Shown here piece after piece: positions 1-14,496 of a DNA stretch of 64,000 nt. Below the pieces are notes generated by a model. It was not told the DNA's origin and made no database searches. It worked only from the letters and a program-made list of their open reading frames with translations. The first letter of the stretch is position 1; each line of letters opens with the position of its first letter. Location of the stretch: the sequence record ON568341.1; one strand, 5' to 3'. Made by a program: the position numbers and the translations under genes.

Positions 1-138
1 AGTACTGTAGTACTGTTGGACACTGGAAAGGTCGCCAATGATAAAGCGATTGCAGGTATATTAACGGATCTTGAGCCTGGTAGCAGTGCACCAATAACGT
101 TAAATGGTAAAGTGTTTAATATTTTACTCACTGATTAA
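1..138 (+). CDS. 3' end of a hypothetical protein, truncated by the window
   Basis: Frame 1 is open (STVVLLDTGK...LLTD*) to TAA at 136-138 and is followed by a terminator. Confidence 0.6.
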   Translation, partial: STVVLLDTGKVANDKAIAGILTDLEPGSSAPITLNGKVFNILLTD

Positions 139-144
139 GTACAT

Positions 145-166
145 AGCCCACCTGGTGGGCTTTTTT
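145..166 (+). terminator. Rho-independent terminator
   Basis: AGCCCAC-ctg-GTGGGCT stem followed by a T-run. Confidence 0.85.
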
Positions 167-371
167 GTTTTTGTAGTATCGTAGTACTGAGATACTTTGA
201 AAATAGTTTTAAGAAAGTAGTTGACATTACCGCAGAAAAGCGTAGAATGTATTACATCAAGACGGGGAGCACTAAGTAGACCGCCAGTAAGTCGAACGAA
301 AAACTGGACACGTCGAGAAAACTTTGATACACTAATAAACGTAAACTAAACTTTAATTGAGGATTTATAAA

Positions 372-854
372 ATGGCTAATGTAAAATCATTTCTGAAAGC
401 ACTGATTTCTAACGACACTGCTATTGCGGCTGAATTGCTGGCGGATCTGGATAGCGATACCATGAAAGCAGTACGCAACAATTTTAACATTGCGTACAGT
501 GAAGCTAAAGAACTGCAAGCCAAAAAGATAGCAGAACTGGAAGAACAGAAAAAAGCCCGTGAAGAAGAACTACAAGCAACGATTGAAAGTATTCAGGCGG
601 CGGTTGCAGGGTTGGATCTGGAAGTAGTTATTGAAATGGCACATAAAGCACTGGCAGTTAAGTACGGGGAAGATAAGCCAGTAACTAAACCTAAAAAATG
701 GATTCAGGAACGCGTAACGGTTGTTCTTGATAATGGCGAGGAACATTTAATTCCCGTGCGTGGTAACTGCATTGCGGTAGTTCTGGATGCTATCAAAGAA
801 AGCGGATTGACTCGCGAGGAATGGATCGAAGCTCACCGCAAAATTGAAGCATAA
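372..854 (+). CDS. H-NS/StpA-like protein with a divergent DNA-binding motif
   Basis: N-terminal coiled coil. The C-terminal VLDNGEEHLIPVRGNCIAVVLDAIKESGLTREEWI aligns without gaps to the E. coli H-NS segment [35 protein letters not shown] (recalled from memory). SD GAGG precedes ATG 372. Confidence 0.6.
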   Translation: MANVKSFLKALISNDTAIAAELLADLDSDTMKAVRNNFNIAYSEAKELQAKKIAELEEQKKAREEELQATIESIQAAVAGLDLEVVIEMAHKALAVKYGEDKPVTKPKKWIQERVTVVLDNGEEHLIPVRGNCIAVVLDAIKESGLTREEWIEAHRKIEA

Positions 855-875
855 CAATTAAAGTACTGAATCACT

Positions 876-902
876 AGCCCACTTCTTATAGTGGGCTTTT
901 TT
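876..902 (+). terminator. Rho-independent terminator
   Basis: AGCCCACT...AGTGGGCT followed by a T-run. Confidence 0.85.
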
Positions 903-1129
903 GTGTTTATCGTTTACCAGTCCACTAGCACCGCCTAGAATCGATTCTAACGCATTAAACTGATTATCTGATGAATAGCCCTAGCTGGTGGCGTTAATGC
1001 CGTTAGAAAGCGATTGAGGACGTTTAAAGTATTTTGCAAAAAGTAATAAAAAGTACTTGCACGATTAAGAGATTAGAGTATAATTAATTACATCAAGACA
1101 AGACACCTTAACTAACTGAGGATATAAAG

Positions 1130-1282
1130 ATGAATACTTATGAACTGGATTGTTTCACTTTACAAGTAATGTCAGTATGCAGTAAAAAAGATTGGTCATC
1201 AAAGGAATTTAAAGCAGTTATTGCGTGTGCAAAACACGGCAAGACTATCAATGAAACGGCATCAATCATTGATAAACTTTAA
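1130..1282 (+). CDS. Hypothetical protein (50 aa, not in the ORF track)
   Basis: Promoter at 1057, SD GAGGA, MNTYELDCF...IDKL*. Confidence 0.7.
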   Translation: MNTYELDCFTLQVMSVCSKKDWSSKEFKAVIACAKHGKTINETASIIDKL

Positions 1283-1354
1283 AAAATAGTTTGACAATAG
1301 TTTTAAGTACTGCGATAATACATACATCAACTACTGAATAGGAATAAAAAAACA

Positions 1355-1582
1355 ATGGCTATCATCATTACTTACGTATCTGGTACTACTGGCACTGCTT
1401 CAACTGTTGCTGTAATTACTAATAAGAAAGGAGCGGAATTACATTTTGCAATGGATAATTGGGCCGTGAAGGAGTTCGGACCGTGGGCAAGTGTAGCATA
1501 CATTGAAACCTATCAAGTGCCATCGATTAGCTTAACTGATTTAGGTGTAGATCGAATCTTATGCCTGGATGAATTAATTTAA
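1355..1582 (+). CDS. Hypothetical protein
   Basis: Own promoter and SD. Confidence 0.75.
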   Translation: MAIIITYVSGTTGTASTVAVITNKKGAELHFAMDNWAVKEFGPWASVAYIETYQVPSISLTDLGVDRILCLDELI

Positions 1583-1668
1583 AAAAGTACTTGCAAAGTA
1601 AATCGAATAAAGTATAATACATTACATCAAGGGGAGAAAATGGTTCTCCCCACTAAGAGGAAACTAAT

Positions 1669-1812
1669 ATGAAAACTTGTCAATGTGGTAAAAAATCTAT
1701 TACTGGTTTGAAACGGGGCGTTGCACTTTGCCAGTACCATTATAATTTACAAGTATGGGGTAAAGAATGGGCCGATCAAGTGGAAGCAATTAAGAAAGCA
1801 AAAAGTAAGTAA
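1669..1812 (+). CDS. Small Cys/His-rich protein, possible Zn ribbon (47 aa)
   Basis: Promoter, hairpin leader and SD GAGG; CQC...CQYH. Confidence 0.7.
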   Translation: MKTCQCGKKSITGLKRGVALCQYHYNLQVWGKEWADQVEAIKKAKSK

Positions 1813-1893
1813 AAATATTATCACAGTACTATTGACATAGATTGATAGTACTGGCATAATAGATTTTATCAAGACAACTAAGAGGAAATTAAA

Positions 1894-2238
1894 ATGGCTA
1901 ACATCAATACTATAGCAGCACAAAATATTAACCTGTCTTCTGTTGAAGTTGTACACATTGCCGCCCGGCGTTGGTTCCAGGCGTCTTATGGTAATACTTA
2001 TTTCTCTTTAACGGTAGATGTTGAAATCAATGGCGAATTTATTGAAGTAGTAAACGTGCCGTTCCAATATGGCTACGGGGATCATTTTGACACTGTAGCA
2101 ATGGAAGAATTTAGCAAGGTTATTAATATGGAAGGTAAAGAGTTTTTACGCGGTTCTTATCTTTCCCGTTTTTGCCGTGATAATAATATTACTGTTTATA
2201 GTTCTGTTAGTGATGTTAAACGCAAAAAAGATCTTTAA
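1894..2238 (+). CDS. Hypothetical protein, paralogue of 7732-8055
   Basis: Shared GNTY.S, YGYG and DVKRKKD motifs. Confidence 0.8.
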   Translation: MANINTIAAQNINLSSVEVVHIAARRWFQASYGNTYFSLTVDVEINGEFIEVVNVPFQYGYGDHFDTVAMEEFSKVINMEGKEFLRGSYLSRFCRDNNITVYSSVSDVKRKKDL

Positions 2239-2318
2239 TTAGCTTTACTTTATGCAGATACTTTGATATAGTGTCTGCATAGGGGAAAGAAATTAAATCA
2301 ACTTAAGAGGATAGTAAA

Positions 2319-2588
2319 ATGAAAAATATCAGTACTTTAATCGATGCAGGCACACATGTTCGTCGGTCTATGGTTGCAACCAGTTCTACAAAACAAGTAG
2401 CGAGCGGTTATCTTGTATTTGTGCACGATGGAAAACTCCTGGAACGTTCAATCAATTTTGATGTTAAAAACAATTGCCGTTTTATTATCTTTAAGCGTGA
2501 GCAATATAAAATTGATTTACCAGCAAAGCCCATTAGTGGGGCGTACAACGTGCAATCATTGTTTGAGCGTCAACCATACACCTATTAA
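2319..2588 (+). CDS. Hypothetical protein
   Basis: Promoter at 2244, SD GAGGA. Confidence 0.75.
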   Translation: MKNISTLIDAGTHVRRSMVATSSTKQVASGYLVFVHDGKLLERSINFDVKNNCRFIIFKREQYKIDLPAKPISGAYNVQSLFERQPYTY

Positions 2589-2639
2589 TCAAAACAACGT
2601 TAGCGGTCGATTTAGGCCGCTTATACTGGGGATTATATA

Positions 2640-2810
2640 ATGAATACTAATCAAGTACTGAACGAGATTGAAAGCATCATTAAACCGATGAAGCGTACTG
2701 ATGCAATGTTAACACCGGAAGAATGCCGCTTATATGAGCGTTACAGCGTCGAACAAGTCCAGGCAATGGCCCGTATCCGTCCGGTTGCCAGTACTGATAA
2801 GGCGGCGTAA
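2640..2810 (+). CDS. Hypothetical protein (56 aa, not in the track)
   Basis: SD GGGGA, MNTNQVLNE...DKAA*. Confidence 0.6.
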   Translation: MNTNQVLNEIESIIKPMKRTDAMLTPEECRLYERYSVEQVQAMARIRPVASTDKAA

Positions 2811-2811
2811 T

Positions 2812-3021
2812 ATGCTTACTGTACAGGATAAGATCGACATCTTAAAGGTTAATATGTATGTGATTGATGCCGTACCTGGTAAAGTATTTGCATACGATGA
2901 CACCACTGTAAGCAATTTCTACTATAGCCAGGACGTGGGGGATCTTTCTGTACAGTCGGTTATTGAAAATGTAGTTAATGCAGCGTATGAGCATTTACTT
3001 TCAAATAGTACTTGCAATTAG
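2812..3021 (+). CDS. Hypothetical protein
   Basis: ATG immediately follows the upstream stop; start corrected from 2734. Confidence 0.65.
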   Translation: MLTVQDKIDILKVNMYVIDAVPGKVFAYDDTTVSNFYYSQDVGDLSVQSVIENVVNAAYEHLLSNSTCN

Positions 3022-3090
3022 TTTTCAGTACTGTATAATGTTTTACATGAAGGGGAGAAATAGTACTCCCCACTAATTAAGGAATATGAA

Positions 3091-3237
3091 ATGAAAGCAT
3101 CAAAAAAGAGTAATACTAAGAAAGCATGTTCACCTTTCGCTGGGGTATTCCCTTTACGTTTCGTTGATGAAGTGGTTTCCTACCCGCCGGGCCTTACTCC
3201 TGAGATGGTAGAAAGTTTGCGTAAATCTAAAAAATAA
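3091..3237 (+). CDS. Hypothetical basic protein (48 aa)
   Basis: Promoter at 3012, hairpin leader, SD AAGGA. Confidence 0.65.
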   Translation: MKASKKSNTKKACSPFAGVFPLRFVDEVVSYPPGLTPEMVESLRKSKK

Positions 3238-3318
3238 TACTTGCAATTAGTTTTTAGTACTGTATAATGTTTTACATGAAGGGGAGAAATGATTCTCCCC
3301 AAGAACAGGAGAAACAAA

Positions 3319-3471
3319 ATGAAACAATACAACGCTCGGTTTGATGTTACTATCGGCAACGGCAAAGGTCAATTCTCTTTCAGTACTCGTAAGAGTTATA
3401 CAGAAAACTTCTTGCGTAATTGTGCACTGACCGCCGCACAAATTAAACATTATTTTCAGGCTAAAAAATGA
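3319..3471 (+). CDS. Hypothetical protein
   Basis: Promoter at 3241, SD AGGAG; start corrected. Confidence 0.7.
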   Translation: MKQYNARFDVTIGNGKGQFSFSTRKSYTENFLRNCALTAAQIKHYFQAKK

Positions 3472-3557
3472 AATCATTAGCTTATTATAGTTCGGCCCTG
3501 GTCGGTGCATTGATCGCGGCATTGTTAGTAGCTTATCTATTCTTTATGGTGATTTAA

Positions 3558-3695
3558 ATGAATCCTAACGGTATAATTTACAGTACTCCTAAAACGAAAG
3601 CAGATAAAGCTAAAGCACGTAAAGCGAAAGTAAAGGAATACATCAAGCAAGGCATGACACGAAAGGCGGCGATTCTAAAAGCTAAAAATAAATGA
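3558..3695 (+). CDS. Very basic small protein (45 aa)
   Basis: MNPNGIIYSTPKTKADKAKARKAK...; SD GGTGA. Confidence 0.55.
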   Translation: MNPNGIIYSTPKTKADKAKARKAKVKEYIKQGMTRKAAILKAKNK

Positions 3696-3800
3696 AAAAA
3701 GTGGTTGACTTCGGTCAGCCATTTTGCTATTATATAATCATTGAGAGATAGCTCACTAGCCCACGGGGTGCGGGAGTGTATCTATTATATAAGCATTGAG
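3695..3800 (+). ncRNA. Terminator/promoter/small-RNA cassette, copy 1
   Basis: Hairpin containing TTGACT-17-TATTAT, then an ORF-less stem-loop with a TAGCCCACGGGGTGC core. Confidence 0.5.
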
Positions 3801-3916
3801 TACTGAAAACTATTTTAAAAGTATTTGCAGAAAGTACTTGCAAACTATCTCAATTGGCGTATAATGTTTTACATCGCAAGGGGAAACGGTTTCCCCTAGT
3901 AATAAGGAATAAAATC

Positions 3917-4258
3917 ATGACTATTGCAATTGTACAATCTAACTTTGAAAATGAAATCATCGCCCAAGCACTGCGTTTAAATGATGGTCGGGCCGAAATT
4001 AATTACGGTTTCAATTCAGGCGGTTGTGAAAAATATCAGTACTTTATAACTGCTGATGGCGGTGTCCTGGGTATTAATACAGTTATTGTAAACATTCAGA
4101 AAATTAATTTCAATGATCCAGACGATAGCCAGTTTTACATTATAGGCGTAGACGTGAACTATGAGGATGACTCACTAACTGATGATTACACTGGCGAGAA
4201 GTTAGAAAGTGCATACGGTGAAGATGATTATCAGTCAGTACCAGAAGATTTCGAATAA
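3917..4258 (+). CDS. Acidic hypothetical protein
   Basis: Promoter at 3838, SD AAGGA; start corrected. Confidence 0.75.
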   Translation: MTIAIVQSNFENEIIAQALRLNDGRAEINYGFNSGGCEKYQYFITADGGVLGINTVIVNIQKINFNDPDDSQFYIIGVDVNYEDDSLTDDYTGEKLESAYGEDDYQSVPEDFE

Positions 4259-4358
4259 TATTAAAAAATAGTTTGACAATAGATTATAGTACTGTATAAT
4301 AGTTTACATCAAGAAACGGGAAGTAACAGTACTTCCCTACTAACAGAGAGAAAACAAA

Positions 4359-4571
4359 ATGGCTGATATCCGCACTTTACTGAAAAATGCAAAACGAGTT
4401 TTATTTTCTGATCACGAACATTTAAACAAGGATATTACTGGCGTTCGGAATATCAAAGATGTAAAACGTGTTATGGGTATCTATTGCAATATGAAACGTG
4501 TTGGCACGTTCGGTAATAAATTTCTATACCAGGCGGGGGATTACAATTTTACACTGACTATCATTAACTAA
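4359..4571 (+). CDS. Hypothetical protein
   Basis: Own promoter, leader hairpin and SD. Confidence 0.75.
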   Translation: MADIRTLLKNAKRVLFSDHEHLNKDITGVRNIKDVKRVMGIYCNMKRVGTFGNKFLYQAGDYNFTLTIIN

Positions 4572-4653
4572 AAATATTATCACAGTACTATTGACATAGT
4601 TTGATAGTACTGGCATAATAGATTTTATCAACTACACTACTAAGGAATTAAAA

Positions 4654-4833
4654 ATGGCTATCATCGCAAAAACTGAAATCATCGGCCTGGATTCTATCAT
4701 CATGACGTTTGAAGATCAAAAAGGTATGTATGTAGTTTCCTATGGTGATTATGTTCGGGAGTATGAAACAGTAGACGAAGCCTTTGAAAGTTACATTCGC
4801 CAGGTGAATAAAGCATACGACGATTACCGCTAA
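4654..4833 (+). CDS. Hypothetical protein (59 aa, not in the track)
   Basis: Promoter at 4591, SD AAGGA. Confidence 0.7.
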   Translation: MAIIAKTEIIGLDSIIMTFEDQKGMYVVSYGDYVREYETVDEAFESYIRQVNKAYDDYR

Positions 4834-4946
4834 AATATATTACCAGTACTATTAAAGATATTGACAACGTTTGATAGTACTGGCATAATAAGTTTTATAA
4901 ACAGTAGTCAAATAGTAGTTAACTTAACAAAAGAGAGAGAAACAAA

Positions 4947-5090
4947 ATGATCGCACTGGATTCATTCATCGATGCAGTTCTGGCAAAAACTGGCGAGGAT
5001 CTGACCGCAGAACAATACGCAATGATCGAGCAATGCCAGCAAGACGGTAAATCGGTGAAAGATACTGTTAAGATTATCCGCAAGATGTAA
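4947..5090 (+). CDS. Hypothetical protein (47 aa, not in the track)
   Basis: Promoter at 4861, AG-rich SD, terminator downstream. Confidence 0.7.
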   Translation: MIALDSFIDAVLAKTGEDLTAEQYAMIEQCQQDGKSVKDTVKIIRKM

Positions 5091-5096
5091 GATTAT

Positions 5097-5125
5097 AAGC
5101 CCATTAGTTAACGCTGGTGGGCTTT
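5097..5125 (+). terminator. Terminator hairpin containing a Chi site
   Basis: AAGCCCA...TGGGCTT with GCTGGTGG at 5113. Confidence 0.7.
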
Positions 5126-5196
5126 AATCATTTACCCTATACAATGCCAGTACTAAACCGTTTATCTCATTAGAATGCATTACAGGACGTTTAACA

Positions 5197-5394
5197 ATGA
5201 TTAGCATGAAATCAGTACAAAAACAAATAGAAACATTATCAAAAATTAAACGTAAACAGTACTCATTAGAATATAATATCAATGGTAACTATCATCTAAT
5301 GAAAGAGAATAATTTTATCGTCATTGATGAATCATTGCAAATTATTAGTATAGTACTGAAAGCATTAATTAATGATAGAAAAAGGTTAAAATAA
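5197..5394 (+). CDS. Hypothetical protein
   Basis: SD AGGA; coupled to the next gene. Confidence 0.6.
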   Translation: MISMKSVQKQIETLSKIKRKQYSLEYNINGNYHLMKENNFIVIDESLQIISIVLKALINDRKRLK

Positions 5395-5651
5395 TGGCAG
5401 TAGGATTCGCGAAAGATGGAGCCGAGCAAGATGAGATTAACGCAGTTATTCAAGCCGCCGTTAACCACGCTAGAAAGCAAATTAACGCACAAATAGAATC
5501 ACTGATACATTGCCTCGACTGCGGCGATAAAATCCCTGAGAATCGCCGACAGGCTGTTAAGGGATGTAAGTACTGCATTAATTGCCAAGTGGATCATGAT
5601 AGTACTTTTAAAAGAGATCCGCGTAATTGTTGGCATAGATCTATGAGATAA
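5394..5651 (+). CDS. TraR/DksA-family C4 zinc-finger protein (YbiI-like)
   Basis: MAVGFAKDGAEQDEI N-terminus and CLDCGDKIPENRRQAVKGCKYCINCQ zinc finger. Confidence 0.9.
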   Translation: MAVGFAKDGAEQDEINAVIQAAVNHARKQINAQIESLIHCLDCGDKIPENRRQAVKGCKYCINCQVDHDSTFKRDPRNCWHRSMR

Positions 5652-5715
5652 AAAGTAATTGACAGTACTGAAAGATAGTGTATAATGTTTTATATCTTAA
5701 CTGAGGATAGAAATC

Positions 5716-6072
5716 ATGGGAATACAACATATCACGCGGACCACTGACAATGGCGAGATCACTGGTTATCAAGTACAGGGCAAAGTAGCACAATTGCAGT
5801 ACTGGTTTGTTAAACGTGGAATCATTGCACCGGATCTTGATTATGACCGTGTAGCGTTTATTGATTCTCTTTATGTTGATCCTGATAGTCGGGGCAATGG
5901 TGAAGGTAACGAATTAATGAATGCCTTTATCGATGCCGCCGATGATTCAGATTGTATCATCTTAGAATGCGATACGGGAGAAGATAACGCCTTTAATCTT
6001 AAAGAATGGTACGAAGGATTCGGATTCGAGGTACTGATCGATAGTGAATATCCTATCATGATTTTATCATAG
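5716..6072 (+). CDS. GNAT-family acetyltransferase
   Basis: IDSLYVDPDSRGNGEGNELM (motif A) and WYEGFGF (motif B). Confidence 0.85.
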   Translation: MGIQHITRTTDNGEITGYQVQGKVAQLQYWFVKRGIIAPDLDYDRVAFIDSLYVDPDSRGNGEGNELMNAFIDAADDSDCIILECDTGEDNAFNLKEWYEGFGFEVLIDSEYPIMILS

Positions 6073-6150
6073 TACTTGCATTTAGTTTTCAGTACTGTTA
6101 TAGTACTTGCATCAAGGGGAAACATCTTCCCCTACTAAGAGGAAATAAAA

Positions 6151-6339
6151 ATGGAAAACTTATCAAGTATTTTAGTACAAGATGATTTCGGTAATCCTGG
6201 AAGTGCTATCATTGTTCGGGGCAATAAAGCAACGTTTGTTATTGCTGGTGGACCCGTACAGCGTAGCATTAAAAATAATGCTGTTACCATTAATAATGTA
6301 CGCTATCGCTTAGATAAAGAATTAATTCATAAACTGTAA
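6151..6339 (+). CDS. Hypothetical protein
   Basis: Own promoter, hairpin and SD. Confidence 0.75.
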   Translation: MENLSSILVQDDFGNPGSAIIVRGNKATFVIAGGPVQRSIKNNAVTINNVRYRLDKELIHKL

Positions 6340-6424
6340 AAAAGTACTGGACAATAGATTATAGTACTGTATAATAGTTTACATGAAGGGGAGAAATGAT
6401 TCTCCCCACTAAGAGGAAAGAAAA

Positions 6425-6637
6425 ATGCAAGGTCAACTAATCGTTCGTAAATGGTCTGATACTAACGAAAAACCGTGGGATGTACAATACATCGCCCCAA
6501 ATGGTGAATCCAGATATCAACCAGGTGTAACGCATAGTACTGAGCAATTCGCCGCCGCTCATCGCGAACGTCTGTTACAATCAATGCAGCACGGTTCCGG
6601 TGAAAAATTCATTCAGGATCATTGGCTGAAAGATTAA
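6425..6637 (+). CDS. Hypothetical protein
   Basis: Own promoter, hairpin and SD. Confidence 0.75.
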   Translation: MQGQLIVRKWSDTNEKPWDVQYIAPNGESRYQPGVTHSTEQFAAAHRERLLQSMQHGSGEKFIQDHWLKD

Positions 6638-6723
6638 AAAGTACTTGCACAGTACTGAATAAAGTGTATAATGTTTTATATCGGAAGGGGAATAGTTCCC
6701 CTCCTAACAAAGAGGAAAGTATA

Positions 6724-6897
6724 ATGGTCCAGGTAGAATTAACAGTACTGAAAGATCTGTTTTATCGGATTGGTACTACTGGCGAATATCCGAAGGGTGA
6801 TAATGCAAAACTTTACGTATCACTCGACTTATGGCAACGCGAACAATTAGCAACGGCCTGGCGTAAAGGCAAAGCAGATAGCGAGGTGAAAGCATGA
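6724..6897 (+). CDS. Hypothetical protein
   Basis: Promoter at 6645, SD GAGGA; start corrected. Confidence 0.7.
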   Translation: MVQVELTVLKDLFYRIGTTGEYPKGDNAKLYVSLDLWQREQLATAWRKGKADSEVKA

Positions 6898-7043
6898 AAG
6901 AATTCTTATTTGAAGTAGTGTTTCAAGGTGTCGGTAATAACCAACTGATTCGAACAAGTGGTTATAATGTTAACCAGGCATGGAATAACATTAAACAAAT
7001 GTACCCGAACGCTATCACATATCGCAACCCGAAAGAAGTTTAA
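6894..7043 (+). CDS. Hypothetical protein (49 aa, not in the track)
   Basis: ATGA overlap, SD GAGGTG. Confidence 0.65.
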   Translation: MKEFLFEVVFQGVGNNQLIRTSGYNVNQAWNNIKQMYPNAITYRNPKEV

Positions 7044-7052
7044 AAATAATTG

Positions 7053-7155
7053 AAAAAGGGATTGACTCCGGTCAGTCCCTTTGCTATTATATACGCATAG
7101 AAACAAATTAGCCCACCGGGTGCATAAATGTATCTATTGTTTGCTGGTGGCTAGT
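7053..7155 (+). ncRNA. Terminator/promoter/small-RNA cassette, copy 2 (with Chi)
   Basis: AAAGGGATTGAC-TCCG-GTCAGTCCCTTT, TAGCCCACCGGGTGC core, Chi at 7143. Confidence 0.5.
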
Positions 7156-7368
7156 ACTATCAAGTACTGAAAACTATTTTTAAAAAAGTACTTGCAAAGT
7201 ATCACGATAAGCGTATAATGTTTTACATCAGGACGGGGAACGAAATAAGTAACCCCGTTAAGTAGTCCAGGAGTAAGACATACGAAAAACTCCCCTGATA
7301 AAATAGTTTGACAATAGAAAGTAAACGAGTATAATACTTACATCAACCACTGATAAGGAAACATTAAA

Positions 7369-7644
7369 ATGCGGACTTTACTTACAGCTAACGAAATCGA
7401 GCAAGTACTGACTACTAATCTGGAACAATGGAAACGTGAAGCAGATATCCAGGCGGTTCAATGCCTTAACGATAAGTTAACGCCAGATGACTTAAGCACG
7501 ATTGTTGATCCACAATTTTATGAAGATATTCACGACACGTCTTTAAGCGTCGAGGATGTACTTGATAAGCACTACATTGATACTGATTTACATGTTTACG
7601 GTCGTAAAAACTTTATCACTATTCACGACATTTACAATACTTAA
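7369..7644 (+). CDS. Hypothetical protein
   Basis: Promoter at 7308, SD AAGGA. Confidence 0.75.
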   Translation: MRTLLTANEIEQVLTTNLEQWKREADIQAVQCLNDKLTPDDLSTIVDPQFYEDIHDTSLSVEDVLDKHYIDTDLHVYGRKNFITIHDIYNT

Positions 7645-7731
7645 GTATTGACAAAGTATCTTAGTACTGTATAATAGTTTACATCAAGCGAGGGGAATGG
7701 TTCCCCTCCTAACAAAGAGAGAGAAATAAAA

Positions 7732-8055
7732 ATGGCTATGATCCTTACCCAGAAAGTAGAACTGAAAATTGTAACCTCCTTTGACATTAAAGTTAATCGG
7801 TGGACTGATAGCCACGGCAATACTTACCACTCCTGCTACGTGTCCGCATTGATTGGTGATCGCTGGGAAGACCTGGGACACGAAACCTTTACATACGGTT
7901 ACGGCACACAAGGCGAGTACACGGGTTTAGAAATCATTAAGGAAACTGTAATAGGTTTCAACCCGAAAGAGAAAGTACTACACAGAATTGAGAAAGAGAT
8001 CAACAAAGAAATTACAGTTCGCTACTACGATGTAAAACGTAAGAAAGACATGTAA
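7732..8055 (+). CDS. Hypothetical protein, paralogue of 1894-2238
   Basis: GNTYHS, YGYG and DVKRKKDM motifs. Confidence 0.8.
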   Translation: MAMILTQKVELKIVTSFDIKVNRWTDSHGNTYHSCYVSALIGDRWEDLGHETFTYGYGTQGEYTGLEIIKETVIGFNPKEKVLHRIEKEINKEITVRYYDVKRKKDM

Positions 8056-8150
8056 TAGAATCCATTTAAAGTACTATTTGACATTGCCCAGATAGTACTT
8101 TATAATAGACTCTAACTTGTAGTACTAACTCAACTAATAGGATGTATACC

Positions 8151-8546
8151 ATGATTACTAAATTCTACGCTACCCGTGAAGCTGCCCGTATTGTTGCACG
8201 CGAGGAAGGAGCAGCATTTAAAGACATGGGCAAAGATGCAACGAAAGGTCAACGCTGGGCCGTACAGTTCAAAGAAATCTCTGATATTGTGAATTCACCT
8301 GAGCCAGTACTGACAGCAGCAGAACTAAAACGAGCGGATATGCTGGCGGCAATACTTGACGCACAAGATGAGTTTATCGCTGACTCTGATATCAAAGTAC
8401 AGGTAAACCACACCGCATGGACTCACGCGGATCACCTGGCAAACCTTAAGCGTCCAAGTGAACTGATTCGCAACCAGAAAGAGATCCGACATGATCGTAA
8501 GGGTAATCGTGTAACAGTATACAGTAAACGCCGCCAGGTTATCTAA
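8151..8546 (+). CDS. Hypothetical protein
   Basis: Promoter at 8078, SD AGGA, terminator downstream. Confidence 0.75.
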   Translation: MITKFYATREAARIVAREEGAAFKDMGKDATKGQRWAVQFKEISDIVNSPEPVLTAAELKRADMLAAILDAQDEFIADSDIKVQVNHTAWTHADHLANLKRPSELIRNQKEIRHDRKGNRVTVYSKRRQVI

Positions 8547-8568
8547 TAACTTGCAGTACTAACAACAC

Positions 8569-8593
8569 GGCGGGATCAGTTCCCGCCTTTTTT
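8569..8593 (+). terminator. Rho-independent terminator
   Basis: GGCGGGA...TCCCGCC followed by T6. Confidence 0.85.
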
Positions 8594-8607
8594 ATAGGAC
8601 AAACAAA

Positions 8608-8862
8608 ATGATTAAGGTTCAACTATATAAAGATAACATCTTACGGGTACACTATAAAGCACCTCAGAGAATCATCACAAAGGCCGTACAGCTTGCTAAT
8701 GAGTTTATTAATGGTAACCTATTACCTAGGAAGTTAAGCAACGGAAAACTGCGTGTAATCGACGTGGACACTAACAACAGGATAGTAATCGAGAACACAG
8801 GAAAAATAAACCTATATGAACACCAACAATACAATAAGAAAATAAAACTAATATCACGTTGA
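8608..8862 (+). CDS. Hypothetical protein
   Basis: SD AGGA. Confidence 0.65.
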   Translation: MIKVQLYKDNILRVHYKAPQRIITKAVQLANEFINGNLLPRKLSNGKLRVIDVDTNNRIVIENTGKINLYEHQQYNKKIKLISR

Positions 8863-9194
8863 CAGTACTCAAATGTTTTAGTATTATGTACACATACCAA
8901 CACGGGAGAAACAAAATGAAATTATCTAAAATCGAAAAGAAAACTATTGATGAAGCAGTTAAGCACGGTTATACCTTTCGTAATGATTCACATTTTACCA
9001 ATTTTCAACAGGGGTATCGTACTATTAAAAAACTAATTGACAAAGGTTTATTAGTTGAAGTCAATAATGGGAACGGTATCGAGTATCAGCCAACCCAAGA
9101 CGCATTATCTTTAAAGAAATATAATATTATCTAATTGACAGTACTCAAATGTTTTAGTACTATATGTACATACCAACACGGGGGAAACAAAATG
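8859..9194 (+). repeat. Duplicated ~60-bp promoter/RBS cassette (8859-8918 and 9135-9194)
   Basis: TTGACAGTACTCAAATGTTTTAGTA...CATACCAACACGGG.GAAACAAAATGA in both copies. Confidence 0.9.
8916..9134 (+). CDS. Hypothetical protein
   Basis: Start corrected; the track start lies inside the promoter. Confidence 0.75.
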   Translation: MKLSKIEKKTIDEAVKHGYTFRNDSHFTNFQQGYRTIKKLIDKGLLVEVNNGNGIEYQPTQDALSLKKYNII

Positions 9195-9434
9195 ATTACT
9201 TTAGAAAAACGTATCAAAGAAACTACATCGCTGGTGGAACTGTTAACAGTACTCAAATGTAAAACAACACCATTTAGCACGCCGGACTTTATTAATATGG
9301 TTGATGTTAATGGTCGCTATCGTATCACGGTCGAACAAGGAGCGGCGAAAGTATTCAGTACTAAAAACACGAAGGAAGTGATCCACGCCGTTAATGTTAA
9401 AAAAGTAGTTGCCATTGATAGTAAAGTACTGTAA
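9192..9434 (+). CDS. Hypothetical protein
   Basis: Start corrected; the track start lies inside the promoter. Confidence 0.75.
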   Translation: MITLEKRIKETTSLVELLTVLKCKTTPFSTPDFINMVDVNGRYRITVEQGAAKVFSTKNTKEVIHAVNVKKVVAIDSKVL

Positions 9435-9465
9435 TATAGTTTCATTAACTCAAGGAGAACATGCA

Positions 9466-10050
9466 ATGCGTAATTATACTAAATTCATCCGTACACTGTC
9501 AGAAATGGAAACCAACAAAGAGATCCTTTCAGCTTGTCGGTTAGCTGGCCTGGAGATCATCGGTGCTGGTTCTTCCCGTATAGTTTTCGCTTTAAATGAT
9601 CGGTTAGTGATTAAGGTCGCGAATTGTGATGCGGGTGTAGAACAAAATGAAACTGAATGTAAGGTATGGAATTTTTTAGACTATGACCGCCCTCAGTTGA
9701 AACAGTACTTTGCAAAGGTGCATATGCATTTATGCGATCCTGATAATATGTTTATCGTTATGGATCGGTTGAGTACTGCAAGCAAAGGTAGTGTGAAGCA
9801 CGTAAACGCGTGCAATGAATTAAAGTACAATATTAAACGTAATGCAATCGAACGCCATCACCGCTTTGCTGATGCACTACAACACGTCGATGATACATTA
9901 TCAACACTAACGATAAGAGATATCAGAAAACAGAATATCGGCCAGGATCGTAATGGCCTTATTAAAGTACTTGATTACGGTTTAACCTGCAATATCTGGA
10001 ATCAGTACTATAAAAAGCGTGATGTGGCAGCAAGTAAGGTAACACGATAA
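9466..10050 (+). CDS. Protein kinase-like (Ser/Thr kinase fold)
   Basis: Gly loop GAGSSR, VIK lysine, helix-C QNETE, catalytic loop RDIRKQNIG, DYG metal-binding motif; SD AAGGAG. Confidence 0.8.
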   Translation: MRNYTKFIRTLSEMETNKEILSACRLAGLEIIGAGSSRIVFALNDRLVIKVANCDAGVEQNETECKVWNFLDYDRPQLKQYFAKVHMHLCDPDNMFIVMDRLSTASKGSVKHVNACNELKYNIKRNAIERHHRFADALQHVDDTLSTLTIRDIRKQNIGQDRNGLIKVLDYGLTCNIWNQYYKKRDVAASKVTR

Positions 10051-10060
10051 AAAAGATTAA

Positions 10061-10165
10061 AAAAGGGATTGACTCCGGTCAGTCCCTTTGCTATTATATA
10101 TCCATTGAGAGATAACTCACTGACCCATAGGGTGCGGAAGTGTATCTATTATATAAGTATTCAGT
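10061..10165 (+). ncRNA. Terminator/promoter/small-RNA cassette, copy 3
   Basis: Same hairpin as copies 2 and 4; TGACCCATAGGGTGC core; body resembles copy 1. Confidence 0.5.
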
Positions 10166-10274
10166 ACTGAAAACTATTTTTAAAAAAGTACTTGCAAACT
10201 ATCTCAATGAGCGTATAATGTTTTATATCGAGAGGGGGAAATGGTTCTCCCTAGTACTAAAAGGAATCAAGACG

Positions 10275-10496
10275 ATGACTACTATGACCTGCGTTCACGC
10301 TTCAAATCTTCTGAATGATGCAGCATTTAAAGCAGGTGAAGAATATCAATGCTATCGGGATGAAAATAAAAAAGTTTTTGTAGTTGATAATAATGGTTTC
10401 CATATTGAATTACAATCCGGCTTCACTGGTTTAAATGGTAAATCAGTATGGGGCGTACAGGATGATAAAGGTACATATCATTTTAAACGTAATTAA
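10275..10496 (+). CDS. Hypothetical protein
   Basis: Promoter at 10192, SD AAGGA; start corrected. Confidence 0.75.
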   Translation: MTTMTCVHASNLLNDAAFKAGEEYQCYRDENKKVFVVDNNGFHIELQSGFTGLNGKSVWGVQDDKGTYHFKRN

Positions 10497-10577
10497 GTAT
10501 TGACAAAGTATATCAGTACTGTATAATAGTTTACATCAAGGGGAGAATGGTTCTCCCCACTAAAAGGAAACAAAATT

Positions 10578-10850
10578 ATGTCCAGCTACTCCGCTACTAT
10601 GATCATTAAAGATATGAACGGTAATCCTACTTCTGCTGGTGGATCATTTGGAAACATTAATTTAGATGGTCGGTTATCCATGCAATCAGCCATCGATGCA
10701 GCGAAAGAAGTTTTTAAGAATGAATGTACTGTTAGTAAGCTGGATTATATGGGTTTCGCTATCGAGAAAACTACTCGTTTTGTGAACTACAAAAATCCAC
10801 TGATGATTGATACTAACCTGAAAGCTAACGAAGTGGGGTACTTATTATGA
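10578..10850 (+). CDS. Hypothetical protein
   Basis: Own promoter, hairpin and SD. Confidence 0.75.
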   Translation: MSSYSATMIIKDMNGNPTSAGGSFGNINLDGRLSMQSAIDAAKEVFKNECTVSKLDYMGFAIEKTTRFVNYKNPLMIDTNLKANEVGYLL

Positions 10851-11038
10851 CAGTAGAAGAAGTAAAAAAAGTACTGGCAGTACTACGATATCATAATCAT
10901 TGCAAGGTGAAGAATGATCCTGATTATCTTGATTCATCCCTGGAGGAAGACACCTTGAACGCTATAAGCCATATGCAGACATTAGCAAAGCGTATGACTG
11001 AAAAGAACATGCCGGACTATATCGGAAATAAAATTTAA
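10847..11038 (+). CDS. Hypothetical protein
   Basis: ATGA overlap. Confidence 0.7.
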   Translation: MTVEEVKKVLAVLRYHNHCKVKNDPDYLDSSLEEDTLNAISHMQTLAKRMTEKNMPDYIGNKI

Positions 11039-11124
11039 AAAGTACTTGCATTGTAGTTAGATTAACGTATAATGTTTTATATCGAGAGGGGAAATGGTTT
11101 CCCCTCAAGTCCAGGAGATACACC

Positions 11125-11388
11125 ATGAACACTATCGAAATCACTATCAATGCACACGTATACGACAACGTAGTACTGCAAACTACTATGACCGCCAATG
11201 ATACCAGTACTTTGCGGAATACTGTTATTAGTGCTGTATGTGCCGCTATCGGTGATGTATCCCTGGAAAATTCAGAACACATCAACAACGGTTTCACTAT
11301 GTGCAAACGTGATAACGCAAAACATATCATCGTGGAAGGTTACGGCGGTGTAGAATTTAATGTTTATATGAAAAAAGTACTTGCATAA
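11125..11388 (+). CDS. Hypothetical protein
   Basis: Own promoter, hairpin and SD AGGAG. Confidence 0.75.
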   Translation: MNTIEITINAHVYDNVVLQTTMTANDTSTLRNTVISAVCAAIGDVSLENSEHINNGFTMCKRDNAKHIIVEGYGGVEFNVYMKKVLA

Positions 11389-11455
11389 TAACTAAAACAA
11401 AGTATAATGTTTTGCATAGGGGGAGATATCCTCCCCCACTAAAAGGAGTAATAAA

Positions 11456-11680
11456 ATGGCTAACTTTGATGAACTGATGCGGGAAGTAGCTTACCTGGCA
11501 GAAGAGAAGAAATCATTCGATTCTATCTATAACACCGCTCACCGTGATTCAGTACTGGCATGTAACCAGGATCAAAAAGATGAACTAATCGCCACCTATC
11601 ATGAAGCATGGAAGTACTACCGACAATGGGAGAAAGAAGAAAGTGAGTCTACCATTGACGGCCTCAATAATCTAATCTAA
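11456..11680 (+). CDS. Hypothetical protein
   Basis: Own promoter, hairpin and SD. Confidence 0.75.
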   Translation: MANFDELMREVAYLAEEKKSFDSIYNTAHRDSVLACNQDQKDELIATYHEAWKYYRQWEKEESESTIDGLNNLI

Positions 11681-11756
11681 AAGTTTTATTTCAGTACTAT
11701 TGACATAGCTTGATAGTACTGATGTAATAACTTTACTAACTACAAGGGGAAACATA

Positions 11757-12014
11757 ATGGATCAATTCACACAATATCGGGTAAATCCTCAAGCTATGGC
11801 CTACGTAGAAGACCATAAAACGTTACCAGTACTGCAACCAGTTAAAGGCCGTATCTATCGTGGCCTTGCCTGGGATACGGCCCAGGATGGATATAAAACC
11901 GTCGCCGTGGGTATGTATTGCGGTGATGGTGAATGGTTTGATCCAAATAATCCGGTATCCATTGACAGTACTGAAAAAATGAAATGGGCCGACTACATCG
12001 AAGATATTTCATAA
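11757..12014 (+). CDS. Hypothetical protein
   Basis: Promoter-like cassette and SD. Confidence 0.75.
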   Translation: MDQFTQYRVNPQAMAYVEDHKTLPVLQPVKGRIYRGLAWDTAQDGYKTVAVGMYCGDGEWFDPNNPVSIDSTEKMKWADYIEDIS

Positions 12015-12104
12015 AAACTATTTGACAGTACTAACCAGTAATGTATAATGTTTTACATAGAGCGGGGGAATAGTTCTCCCGCCAATAGTTTGGAGTAAAA
12101 CATT

Positions 12105-12305
12105 ATGTCTATCGCTATCGCCCTGGTTGAAGTACTGAAAGAAGCTAAAGCCAACCTTATCGACGTAAAGATCCAGGAACTACAAAACGGCTTAATCGGC
12201 TGTACTTGTACCGCTGGTGGAGCGGCAGACTATCGAGAACACGAATCACTCGAATCACTGGTTCGGTATCTTACCATGATCGTTGATGATTGGAGAATCA
12301 TCTAA
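12105..12305 (+). CDS. Hypothetical protein
   Basis: Own promoter, hairpin and SD. Confidence 0.75.
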   Translation: MSIAIALVEVLKEAKANLIDVKIQELQNGLIGCTCTAGGAADYREHESLESLVRYLTMIVDDWRII

Positions 12306-12320
12306 CAAAAAAGAATAAAA

Positions 12321-12450
12321 AAAGGGATTGACTCCGGTCAGTCCCTTTGCTATTATATACGCATAGACAAAAACTAGCCCACAGGGTGCATAGGTGTATC
12401 CAAAATATATAGTTAATAACGGTGAGTAACTATCTGCTGGTGGAACTAAA
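12321..12450 (+). ncRNA. Terminator/promoter/small-RNA cassette, copy 4 (with Chi)
   Basis: Same hairpin; TAGCCCACAGGGTGC core; Chi at 12436. Confidence 0.5.
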
Positions 12451-12550
12451 ACTATTAATAAAAAAGTATTGACAAAGTATATCAGTACTGCAATAATGTA
12501 TCTCGTAGGGCGGCAATGGTGCGACGGCCCACAAAGTTAGGAGATTCACC

Positions 12551-12883
12551 ATGAGTACTTCAATCGCTATCGTTAAAGCTTTCATCCGTACTAATGTTTC
12601 CTCTGTATTCATCGACGGCCTCGACCGTAACGTAGAATACTCAATCATTATCGCACAAACGGCAAACGGTTCTCGGTACATCCTGAATGATAGTGAAGCA
12701 AATCACTACTACTTCACTAAAGCCACTGGCTTTAAACGCATCGATGCTGATGTAGTATACGCTAAGATGAATAAGCTGGTAGACAAGATTAACGCGAAAG
12801 GTACTATCGATTTACAGTACTGGACCGAAACCGATCCAGAATATGGATCTCACCGCTACCTGAATCCAGGTATCAAAATGTAA
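12551..12883 (+). CDS. Hypothetical protein
   Basis: Own promoter, hairpin and SD AGGAG. Confidence 0.75.
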   Translation: MSTSIAIVKAFIRTNVSSVFIDGLDRNVEYSIIIAQTANGSRYILNDSEANHYYFTKATGFKRIDADVVYAKMNKLVDKINAKGTIDLQYWTETDPEYGSHRYLNPGIKM

Positions 12884-12972
12884 AAAGTACTTGCATAGTA
12901 CTTAGATTCATGTATAATGTTTTACATAGAGAGGGGGAAATGGTTCTCCCTCCTAAATTAAGGAGTTTTATC

Positions 12973-13374
12973 ATGACCTTCTCAATCACTTCCTTCGCTG
13001 ACGTTTTAGTACTGGCCCGGACTTTTGGTAAAGCTGGCCTTGAGCACGCTGTAAGTAATGGTCATATGCACCCTGAATATTGCCGCATCATCGGTAGCTG
13101 CAAACGTTGGGCCGTGTCCCGTAACATTGAGATTGAAAACTTCAATGACGGCAACAACGAATATACAGTTGATGCAGTATTCGAAGCCGTTGATCTCGGC
13201 GGTATCTATAACACTAACCTGAATGATGTGCGTATCGTTCGCACGGGGTTCGGTGCTTATGATGTATCTATCCGTGAAGCTATGGACAAGGGATACATTA
13301 GCAAGGACCAGTTAGCTTACATCATGCAGCAAACTAAGGAACGTAACGAAGCACGTACTATCTTAGGGTTGTAA
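12973..13374 (+). CDS. Hypothetical protein
   Basis: Promoter at 12891, SD AAGGAG; start corrected. Confidence 0.75.
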   Translation: MTFSITSFADVLVLARTFGKAGLEHAVSNGHMHPEYCRIIGSCKRWAVSRNIEIENFNDGNNEYTVDAVFEAVDLGGIYNTNLNDVRIVRTGFGAYDVSIREAMDKGYISKDQLAYIMQQTKERNEARTILGL

Positions 13375-13398
13375 GCGTTACACATCACCAAACATCAT

Positions 13399-13420
13399 AG
13401 GCCGCCTTGTAGCGGCCTTA
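13399..13420 (+). terminator. Terminator-like hairpin
   Basis: AGGCCGC-cttgta-GCGGCCT. Confidence 0.6.
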
Positions 13421-13442
13421 ACTATATCAGGAGTTCATACAC

Positions 13443-13652
13443 ATGAACTATACAGTATACAGCGTTCTAGGCACTATTGCAGGCGTACATGATAACGTCG
13501 ATGGTGCTATGCGTACAGTACTGCAACAGGTTCCACTAAAGCCTAAGACCATTAAGCAGATGACAGCACGACTAACCAGGGCGACGGCTGGCGTGGAAGT
13601 ATGGCAGGACTATGGGGATACACAGATAATCGTAAGCGTAACGAAGGATTAA
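13443..13652 (+). CDS. Hypothetical protein
   Basis: SD AGGAG. Confidence 0.7.
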   Translation: MNYTVYSVLGTIAGVHDNVDGAMRTVLQQVPLKPKTIKQMTARLTRATAGVEVWQDYGDTQIIVSVTKD

Positions 13653-13676
13653 TGCGTAAAAGGATTTAGTACTGAT

Positions 13677-13749
13677 TCAGAAAAAAGTCAAGGCGTTTTT
13701 TAAATTATGCGTTAAAAAAATGCATAGGTAATCCCTTGACTTTTTTGAA
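13677..13749. repeat. 13-bp perfect inverted repeat at the early/middle boundary
   Basis: AAAAAAGTCAAGG (13681-13693) and CCTTGACTTTTTT (13734-13746). Confidence 0.7.
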
Positions 13750-13843
13750 ATAAAAGGGATTGGACTATGGCAAAATGCGTAGGGGGCTAAAGGGCGGGTA
13801 ACCTTAGCGACTTCGTTAAAGGGGTATTACGAATAAAATGTTA

Positions 13844-13871
13844 TTGACTTTTTATATAAATCGTATAAAAT
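13844..13871 (+). promoter_or_regulatory. sigma70 promoter driving the LGTNYQE array
   Basis: TTGACT-16-TAAAAT. Confidence 0.6.
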
Positions 13872-14099
13872 ATGATTGATAATAATTTTAAGGGAGTCCC
13901 TGTGCGTATTTTAACTCAAGCAGAACACCACGAAAGACTTATCAATAACATGGCTATGATAATGTATAAGTCCCATGACCGTGGTATTGCATATAAGCGT
14001 GAATTAGTACTGGAACTATTCATTGGGACTAACTATCAGGAAAGGTATGTCAACGATTGGATTTGGTATTTAATTGAAGATATAACGAGTAAACTATGA
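13872..14099 (+). CDS. LGTNYQE-family paralogue
   Basis: FIGTNYQE. Confidence 0.8.
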   Translation: MIDNNFKGVPVRILTQAEHHERLINNMAMIMYKSHDRGIAYKRELVLELFIGTNYQERYVNDWIWYLIEDITSKL

Positions 14100-14290
14100 T
14101 AATTTTAACTAAAGAAGAATATCAATCACTGTTACGTAAAAACTACGTAAAGATTTACAATACAGCCACACACGTAGAACGAATGGAGTTATACCTTTTG
14201 ATTACATTGGGAACTAACTATCAGGAAAGATGGGTGATTCAATATATGGATACATTGAAAAATAAAATATTGTCCACGAGGAAACAATGA
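14096..14290 (+). CDS. LGTNYQE-family paralogue
   Basis: TLGTNYQE. Confidence 0.8.
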   Translation: MIILTKEEYQSLLRKNYVKIYNTATHVERMELYLLITLGTNYQERWVIQYMDTLKNKILSTRKQ

Positions 14291-14496
14291 AAATCATAAC
14301 ACACAGACAAGCATTGAGTCGTATGGTGAAGTATCTTGAATTGATGGTGTCTATACCAAAGAGCTTACCAAAAACTGAAAGAGAGATACATTCAGCAGAG
14401 TATCGTCTATTAGCAGTACTGAATACTAACTACCAAGATGAATATGTTGACGATTGGATTCTATCATTAATAGAAGATATAAAGAGTAAACTATGA
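14287..14496 (+). CDS. LGTNYQE-family paralogue
   Basis: VLNTNYQD. Confidence 0.8.
   Translation: MKIITHRQALSRMVKYLELMVSIPKSLPKTEREIHSAEYRLLAVLNTNYQDEYVDDWILSLIEDIKSKL

Follow-up and report, generated by a model that had tools for sequence, protein, structure and literature searches.

A likely portable-promoter array of early genes with leader hairpins in the terminal repeat of Escherichia phage UE-S1

The 64,000-nucleotide stretch of sequence record ON568341.1 that we analyzed (hereafter the window) comes from Escherichia phage UE-S1, an Asteriusvirus of the Rak2-like jumbo phages with a 358-kb genome. Its first 13 kb hold an array of small genes preceded by near-consensus sigma70 promoters, and 15 of the 33 promoters are followed by a short G-rich/C-rich hairpin. 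We consider a portable-promoter array of early genes with a transcribed leader hairpin to be the likely explanation of this arrangement. Under the mechanism we propose, host RNA polymerase would read an array of small, mostly orphan early genes in a long direct terminal repeat (DTR), and a near-consensus sigma70 promoter on nearly every gene would make each one expressible on cell entry. The promoter segment, consisting of an AT-rich upstream stretch, the -35, an AGTACT spacer, the -10, and the start region, would provide a short portable homology, and recombination between such segments would delete, insert, or replace the enclosed leader hairpin, ribosome-binding site (RBS), and open reading frame (ORF). 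The hairpin would be an optional 20-nt module between the predicted start site and the RBS, transcribed into the 5' untranslated region (UTR) at about +6 to +27 as judged from promoter geometry, and kept by selection on sense-strand base pairing.

Positions 1-14,500 of the window correspond to ON568341.1 124,001-138,500 at 100% identity. The array is collinear with the annotated DTR (1-21,525) of the sister phage vB_Ec-M-J, the end of which falls at about window position 13,800. By homology, 221-13,800 would thus be the right two thirds of a DTR of ~21 kb, of which about 6.5 kb more, with the same architecture, lies upstream of the window. A DTR of 20,993 bp has been verified experimentally for fEgEco12 by PhageTerm and restriction digests, and according to the same paper the 8.3-kb repeat published for UE-S1 is probably mis-assigned (PMC13070987). 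Relatives cover 37-75% of the query. The repeat within the window is as follows.
1-13800, + strand: by homology, the ~14 kb on the right of the ~21-kb direct terminal repeat, holding the early-gene array (39 small ORFs; median 73 amino acids)

Between 221 and 13,000 we find 33 sigma70-type sites on the + strand serving the 39 ORFs. An earlier, sequence-only reading of this DNA had proposed about 33 promoters in 13 kb, which is borne out, and a design of one promoter to one gene, which is nearly true. The promoters take the form of aaaaaGTACTTGCAA or TTGACA, a spacer of 16-17 nt, (cAGTACTG)TATAAT, and gTTTTACATCAAG; their consensus is aaaaaGTAC-TTGCAA/TTGACA-N16/17-(cAGTACTG)TATAAT-gTTTTACATCAAG, with the AT-rich stretch aaaaa(gtac) upstream of TTGACA or TTGCAA. 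At a strict threshold of at least 10 of 12 matches to TTGACA/TATAAT, 26 promoters lie on the + strand and 3 on the - strand. This set is far above the Markov expectation, as 300 first-order simulations of the region gave 3.9 ± 2.0 strict sites with a maximum of 12. A laxer scan returned 74 sites against 48 ± 8. By class, the 33 promoters comprise 15 with a hairpin, 11 with a short unstructured leader, 4 in composite elements, 2 that precede an ORF-less RNA, and 1 with an irregular leader.

The 15 clean leader hairpins have stems of 6-9 bp with G-rich and C-rich arms (GGGG.../...CCCC) and folding energies of -10.6 to -16 kcal/mol. Their cassettes, together with the irregular leader, are listed here.
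1591-1668, + strand: hairpin cassette with TTGCAA-N16-TATAAT and a Shine-Dalgarno (SD) sequence; hairpin 1631-1651, ATG 1669, covariance-model score 29.2 bits
3012-3090, + strand: hairpin cassette; hairpin 3052-3071 (6 bp, 8-nt loop), ATG 3091
3241-3318, + strand: hairpin cassette; hairpin 3281-3300, ATG 3319; a near-duplicate of the 3012 cassette (96% over 57 nt)
3838-3916, + strand: hairpin cassette; hairpin 3879-3897, ATG 3917
4273-4358, + strand: hairpin cassette; hairpin 4318-4337 (GGGAAGTA/TACTTCCC), ATG 4359
6076-6150, + strand: hairpin cassette, right partner of the GNAT-gene deletion; hairpin 6115-6133, ATG 6151
6348-6424, + strand: hairpin cassette; hairpin 6388-6407, ATG 6425
6645-6723, + strand: hairpin cassette; hairpin 6686-6702, ATG 6724
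7648-7731, + strand: hairpin cassette; hairpin 7690-7708, ATG 7732
10192-10274, + strand: hairpin cassette; hairpin 10233-10252 with a G.U pair, ATG 10275
10500-10577, + strand: hairpin cassette; hairpin 10540-10558, ATG 10578
11046-11124, + strand: hairpin cassette; hairpin 11086-11106, ATG 11125
11381-11455, + strand: hairpin cassette; hairpin 11419-11437, ATG 11456
12022-12104, + strand: hairpin cassette; hairpin 12062-12082 with a G.U pair, ATG 12105
12891-12972, + strand: hairpin cassette; hairpin 12931-12952, ATG 12973
12469-12550, + strand: promoter with an irregular leader
Five of the six hairpins named in the sequence-only reading are correct to within 1 nt. The sixth, at 12508 (GGGCGGC..GACGGCCC), folds no better than shuffled sequence (z = +0.94) and was rejected.

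The placement of these hairpins is narrowly fixed. Those in the window begin 10-14 nt (once 17 nt) after the -10 and end 17-23 nt before the ATG. A comparative set from six Asteriusviruses, comprising 84 distinct leaders with 44 distinct hairpins, 31 stems, and 18 loop types, has the same layout: the hairpin starts 10-14 nt past the -10 in 79 of the 84 leaders (mode 12) and ends 17-23 nt ahead of the start codon in 83. Stems in this set have 7-9 bp and loops 3-5 nt, apart from one stem of 6 bp and one loop of 8 nt. The SD of the cassettes is of the type AAGAGGAAA, and it is left unpaired together with the AUG in every minimum free energy (MFE) fold. Sequestration of the SD by the 3' arm was also considered, and no sign of it appeared, the MFE folds of the 15 leaders containing the main hairpin only.

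An anchored alignment of 36 distinct leaders from the six Asteriusviruses reveals changes on both sides of the stem at 5 of 8 pairs, with G-C, A-U, C-G, and U-A found, for example, at outer pairs. Double-change cells number 43, whereas shuffles yield 9.7 ± 2.5 and none of 500 reaches 43, and all slid registers drop to 53-72% paired. These results uphold the covarying hairpin of the sequence-only reading. G.T pairs are frequent (22 cells), the better fold is that of the sense strand in 64 leaders versus the antisense strand in 34, and purines make up 95% of the 5' arm and pyrimidines 95% of the 3' arm. Because of the G.T pairs, the better folding of the sense strand, the different stems within one genome, and the variable spacing of the arms, an RNA or sense-strand structure would fit better than a double-stranded operator. 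The hairpin thus probably acts as RNA.

The structure is confined to the terminal repeat. A covariance model run on the whole UE-S1 genome returned 18 matches, all on the + strand and all at 119.6-137.0 kb in the DTR region, and the 64-kb window contains no promoter-linked purine-armed hairpin past 12,931. A pattern scan of IMG/VR for the main hairpin variant found phage 121Q itself only and gave no sign of wide environmental spread at that stringency. The hairpin is also optional, since an orthologous promoter and gene occur with it in phage W70 and without it in UE-S1 (1291-1355); it is therefore a discrete module.

That cassettes mediate gene turnover is, in our view, very probable. We compared UE-S1 by chained alignment with five relatives (vB_Ec-M-J, ph0011, 121Q, Sharanji, and slurp01), which are 87-97% identical to it in aligned blocks. 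All five are collinear with UE-S1 and differ from it by 12 distinct indel or replacement events, 8 of which are bounded by cassettes on both sides.
1130-1282: gene within a cassette-bounded event
3091-3237: gene missing in 121Q, between the 3012 and 3241 cassettes; 72-nt junction overlap
5716-6072: GNAT gene, promoter-to-promoter deletion
11125-11388: gene missing in 121Q; junction in the promoter spacer
7296-7350, 7631-7738, 10495-10590, and 12455-12522: cassette-bounded events with extra genes in relatives
Two further events (1904-2213 and 6339) have a cassette on one side only, and two (2770-2787, and 5383-5395 at a stop/start overlap) are unrelated to cassettes. In six of the 8 events the flanking alignments overlap by 46-108 nt, the signature of direct cassette repeats. 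At the 7648 cassette, for instance, four relatives carry an extra 60-amino-acid gene between two copies (108-nt overlap), and at the 10500 cassette three relatives carry an extra 135-amino-acid gene in the same arrangement (96-nt overlap).

Three-way alignments of five events place all five resolved crossovers within the promoter, between the -35 and the start region. The crossover at 7648 lies in a 44-nt identical promoter stretch, that at 3012/3241 in a stretch of about 70 nt, and that at 10500 in about 17 nt of the -35 region, while those at 5659/6076 and 11046/11381 fall in the spacer. A recombinant therefore receives hairpin, RBS, and ORF as one unit, that of the right-hand copy. Most cassette copies within the genome share 60-80% identity and a few pairs reach 88-96%; the homology available is therefore short.

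At greater distance the same cassettes appear in a different order. Klebsiella phage fENko-Kae01, which has 29% average nucleotide identity (ANI) to fEgEco12 (PMC13070987, Table 2), possesses a 19.7-kb DTR of the same build; of the approximately 45 such promoters in it, about 10 have G/C hairpins. Homologs of 17 of the 39 UE-S1 cargo genes are found in this DTR in a partly rearranged order, and at the 12891 cassette the upstream 100 nt are 82% identical between the two phages versus 69% for the coding sequence (CDS). BLAST matches to the cassettes extend to unrelated coliphages of ~140-150 kb, in which the covariance model identifies 4 hairpins in W70 (Vequintavirinae) and 7 in muut (Justusliebigvirus, Stephanstirmvirinae). 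W70 and UE-S1 have five cargo genes and an ORF-less leader unit in common, at 70-83% identity and in different order. Phage muut contains a 517-nt block with 92% identity to UE-S1 that runs from inside the -10 of one promoter to the next cassette, where identity ceases at the hairpin.

These comparisons bear on the proposal, made in the sequence-only reading, that cargo genes are swapped by recombination between the repeats. Cassette-bounded events, crossovers in promoters, and reordered cassettes in distant phages speak for it, but the close relatives are collinear, and among them gain, loss, and replacement seem to take place in fixed slots rather than by free shuffling. Invariant gene order, which that reading had named as evidence against swapping, holds among close relatives and fails at greater distance (fENko-Kae01, W70, and muut).

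The ORF-less units (GGACGGGGAAC...CCCCGTTAAGTAG) occur twice in the window, and also at L008:3883-4000 and L009:3555-3670.
221-350, + strand: promoter ahead of the gene at 372, with a leader or small RNA that is structured and lacks an ORF
7192-7300, + strand: promoter with an ORF-less structured RNA (GGACGGGGAAC...CCCCGTT), also in W70 and muut
As the unit is present in the unrelated W70 and muut, it travels between phage families like the gene cassettes.

Turnover of the UE-S1 cassettes is the principle of the promoter-early stem-loop (PeSL) cassettes, known from the T4-like phages RB49/phi1, PST/T4, and nt-1/KVP40 (Arbiol et al. 2010, PMC2839356; Comeau et al. 2014, PMC4122927). A PeSL is a repeated intergenic motif of ~100 bp made up of an AT-rich stretch, a near-consensus sigma70 early promoter, a stem-loop of a G-tract and a C-tract, an SD, and a start codon. 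PeSLs are concentrated among orphan genes in hyperplastic regions and bound indels or replacements between close relatives. Their crossovers have been placed in the interval from the -10 to the ATG, or else within the stem-loop region, and neighboring motifs also give rise to excised mini-circles. In a PeSL the stem-loop precedes the start site, being found within the AT-rich region, over the -35 or the -10, in the spacer that separates these, or immediately ahead of the start, and it is taken as a terminator or attenuator of upstream transcription (PMC2839356, PMC4122927). The UE-S1 cassettes are alike in the near-consensus sigma70 promoter after an AT-rich stretch (all 33 sites), the adjacent poly-G/poly-C stem-loop (the 15 hairpins), the SD and start codon that close the motif on its 3' side, the location in a hyperplastic orphan-gene region, and the bounding of indels. 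The defining difference is that the UE-S1 hairpin, which has no U-tract, lies downstream of the predicted start, in the predicted 5' UTR of the gene itself. The setting, a 21-kb terminal repeat of a Rak2-like jumbo phage, differs as well.

Four composite terminator/promoter elements match the PeSL subclass in which the stem-loop lies over the -35.
3698-3810, + strand: composite element, copy 1 of 4 of a repeat family
7055-7170, + strand: composite element, copy 2; Chi site at 7143
10062-10175, + strand: composite element, copy 3 of the repeat family
12321-12450, + strand: composite element, copy 4; Chi site at 12436
In each, a 12-bp terminator-like hairpin flanked by A/T (AAAGGGATTGACTCCGGTCAGTCCCTTT) encloses the -35 of a TTGACT-N17-TATTAT promoter, which is followed by about 100 nt that lack an ORF and fold around an AGCCCAC...GGGTGC core. 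The element resembles the PeSLs in layout, and it may be a small RNA gene.

Several points weigh against a portable-promoter array with a selected, transcribed hairpin. We infer the place of the hairpin within the transcript from its spacing to the -10 alone. Per-leader fold z-scores are modest (-0.5 to -3.6), and the leaders used for the covariation analysis were chosen for folding, so their 100% pairing owes something to that choice, and what is informative in that test is the compensatory changes and the register control. The purine/pyrimidine bias of the arms may reflect descent from one ancestral cassette through transitions among G-C, G.U, and A-U pairs rather than function. With regard to turnover, some events may have arisen by short-homology or illegitimate recombination, given copies that are 60-80% identical, and junctions at intergenic cassettes are also expected from selection for viable phages. 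The collinear gene order of the close relatives is a further such point.

If the hairpin acts as RNA, its role would most likely be the tuning of mRNA fate rather than the carrying of sequence-specific information: it may slow decay or set the boundaries at which early mRNAs are processed, with the RBS and AUG staying unpaired. The balance on such a generic tuning role is about even. Most of that weight goes to stabilization as such, a role we advance tentatively. The sequence-only reading had held that the leader shields mRNA from RppH and RNase E, a claim that our analysis weakens. Transcription from sigma70 promoters usually starts 6-8 nt past the -10, and the start predicted for the cassettes is the A of ACATC at that distance. 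In most leaders, about 5-7 nt would then separate the 5' end from the hairpin. Emory et al. 1992 are said to have found that stabilization requires a stem-loop within 2-4 nt of the 5' terminus. The 5' stabilizer stem-loops of the ompA 5' UTR and the T7 phi10 leader stand at the 5' end or within 2-4 nt of it. Like these, the UE-S1 leader is a short 5' UTR with a small GC-rich hairpin, followed by an RBS that stays unpaired, but it mostly has a predicted single-stranded tail of 5-7 nt. In addition, a scanning RNase E readily bypasses a simple orthogonal stem-loop (PMC9943677). The classical shield is poorly supported because the predicted tail exceeds 2-4 nt and simple stem-loops are bypassed, and an obstacle to RNase E scanning was dropped as the main mechanism on the latter ground. 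An alternative -10 (TTACAT), which would put the hairpin at the 5' end, was rejected on inspection, as there is no -35 or TG at the right distance. Two further ideas of the sequence-only reading, that the promoter array would sequester RNA polymerase and that the leaders would mark phage mRNA for protection from a nuclease, are speculative.

Other roles for the hairpin have to be weighed against mRNA tuning. Intercistronic hairpins that protect 3' ends are known in E. coli operons, and the UE-S1 hairpins could likewise shield the 3' end of the upstream cistron from 3' exonucleases after endonucleolytic cutting, so that each gene would end up on its own hairpin-bounded mRNA. The scarcity of terminators, which makes extensive read-through likely, and the presence of a hairpin just 3' of each upstream gene agree with this idea. 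However, the position of the hairpin is fixed with respect to the -10 and ATG of the downstream gene rather than the stop codon of the upstream one, and in recombinants the hairpin goes with the downstream gene, making 3' protection improbable. The hairpin might instead act on read-through RNA as an attenuator or terminator, curbing transcriptional pile-up from upstream and the output of its own over-strong promoter. True terminators are scarce in the array, and the PeSL stem-loops are likewise poly-G/poly-C, one of which, placed after a promoter, cut lacZ as strongly as rrnB T1 (PMC2839356). Unlike intrinsic terminators, the GC-rich hairpins of UE-S1 have no U-run: they are followed by ACTAAGAGG, with tails such as actaagagga and ctaacaaaga, and none of the 15 is terminator-like in a + strand scan. 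A terminator in its own 5' UTR would, moreover, silence its gene, and the window has distinct terminator-type hairpins elsewhere (at 145, 876, and 8569, plus the four composite elements). We therefore regard attenuation as unlikely.

The hairpin could also be a recognition tag through which a phage or host factor times the shut-off of early mRNAs, as RegB does at GGAG in T4, or exempts them from a nuclease. An invariant G-C core with GAA/TTC closing pairs, a GGAG or GGGGAG word in the 5' arm, and the confinement of the hairpin to early terminal-repeat transcripts are in keeping with a tag. The loops are highly variable (18 types, 3-8 nt), which argues against a loop-reading protein; stems differ inside one genome, a given gene works both with the hairpin and, in another phage, without it, and the cargo proteins scanned include no candidate reader, leaving a tag distinctly unlikely. 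In a broader form of this idea, the promoter-leader cassette would be a shared "common currency" in which at least three unrelated coliphage lineages (Rak2-like jumbo phages, Vequintavirinae, and Stephanstirmvirinae) exchange early genes that are ready for expression. The transcribed hairpin would then be no passive structure but a functional tag on these mobile early mRNAs, by which a phage or host factor would time their shut-off or exempt them from a nuclease; this, too, we think unlikely. A hairpin that is a functionless relic of a duplicated ancestral cassette would explain why cassettes group into families by descent, why the arm asymmetry fits transition-only drift, and why the structure is dispensable for at least one gene. 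It would not account for the compensatory double changes, for the lack of any broken stem among those resolved, or for the retention of the hairpin both in two unrelated subfamilies and in a Klebsiella phage from a different lineage (29% ANI, PMC13070987 Table 2), and is highly unlikely. Finally, an inverted repeat directly downstream of a promoter, in cassettes that are recombination sites, might function as a DNA-level palindrome, either as the operator of a dimeric repressor or as a recombination-promoting cruciform. Several different half-site sequences are present within one genome, each mirrored in its own partner arm and with 3-8 nt between arms, the G.T pairs and the greater stability of the sense strand point to RNA, and all 5 resolved crossovers fall in the promoter, not in the hairpin. 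The chance that the structure works as DNA is consequently very remote.

Among other early-gene arrays, the SPO1 host-takeover module, the T5 pre-early region, and the "tre" genes of Twort-like phages are terminal repeats densely filled with small early genes that are expressed first after injection, many of which have strong RBSs and strong promoters of the host type. The UE-S1 array resembles these in its packing of early genes into a terminal repeat, and the sequences are unrelated. To our knowledge, neither a standard covarying leader hairpin nor a recombination role for the promoters has been reported for any of them. In the Rak2-like phage CBB, 18 RpoD-like promoters with UP-like elements have been predicted (Buttimer et al. 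2017, PMC5259590). As in UE-S1, these host-type promoters cluster among short hypothetical early genes and on a terminal repeat of ~22 kb, although the paper makes no mention of a stem-loop leader or of recombination at promoters (PMC5259590). In the papers searched on this phage group we found no description of such cassettes in Asteriusvirus or its relatives.

The hairpin-free promoters mostly have a 17-nt spacer, and several have a TGn-extended (C/G)ATAAT -10. Four of their 11 leaders were folded and gave 0 to -2.6 kcal/mol.
1057-11756, + strand: promoters with short, unstructured, hairpin-free leaders (n = 11); -35 starts at 1057, 1291, 1832, 4591, 4861, 5659, 7308, 8078, 8859, 9135, and 11709
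The palindrome AGTACT occurs 213 times in window 1-64000, about 10 times the expectation, and CAGTAC and GTACTG are enriched 11-13-fold. AGTACT is scattered over coding and noncoding DNA, and the cassettes carry it at two fixed places, one overlapping the 5' border of the -35 and the other immediately ahead of the -10.

Of the 20 largest cargo proteins, 16 are without a Pfam match. The recognizable genes among the orphans are these.
8608-8862: ParE-like toxin domain (E = 6e-11)
5394-5651: DksA/TraR zinc finger
5716-6072: GNAT acetyltransferase, missing from two relatives
9466-10050: weak protein-kinase match
A paralogous family of ~107-114 amino acids (GNTY...YGYG...KRKKD) occupies different array slots at 1894-2238 and 7732-8055; each Asteriusvirus has one to three copies (for example, L004:16153-16476), as counted in the relatives from annotated 324-nt CDSs alone. 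Seven of the 39 array genes start with ATGGCT (Met-Ala), and cassette homology often reaches into these first codons, as at the left junction of the 1904-2213 replacement. No Rfam family matches anywhere in the window at gathering thresholds, and the window has one tRNA gene, at 30070.

The terminal-repeat part of the window also contains eight co-oriented Chi sites, with one more in the other 50 kb.
984, 5113, 6244, 7143, 9230, 10635, 12213, and 12436, + strand: Chi sites (GCTGGTGG)
In Klebsiella phage fENko-Kae01, Chi occurs even within promoter spacers. Such sites could shield the DNA end that enters the cell from RecBCD, and they could favor recombination in the very region where cassettes turn over.

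Overall, the array carries the PeSL idea, in which regulatory repeats double as exchange sites for orphan genes, beyond T4-like phages and into the terminal repeats of Rak2-like jumbo phages. Its hairpins provide a natural series of about 30 stem variants on near-identical strong promoters, suited to the study of how stem-loops near the 5' end affect mRNA fate in E. coli. The occurrence of cassettes and cargo in unrelated coliphage subfamilies suggests that these phages draw on a common pool of plug-and-play early genes for host takeover or anti-defense.

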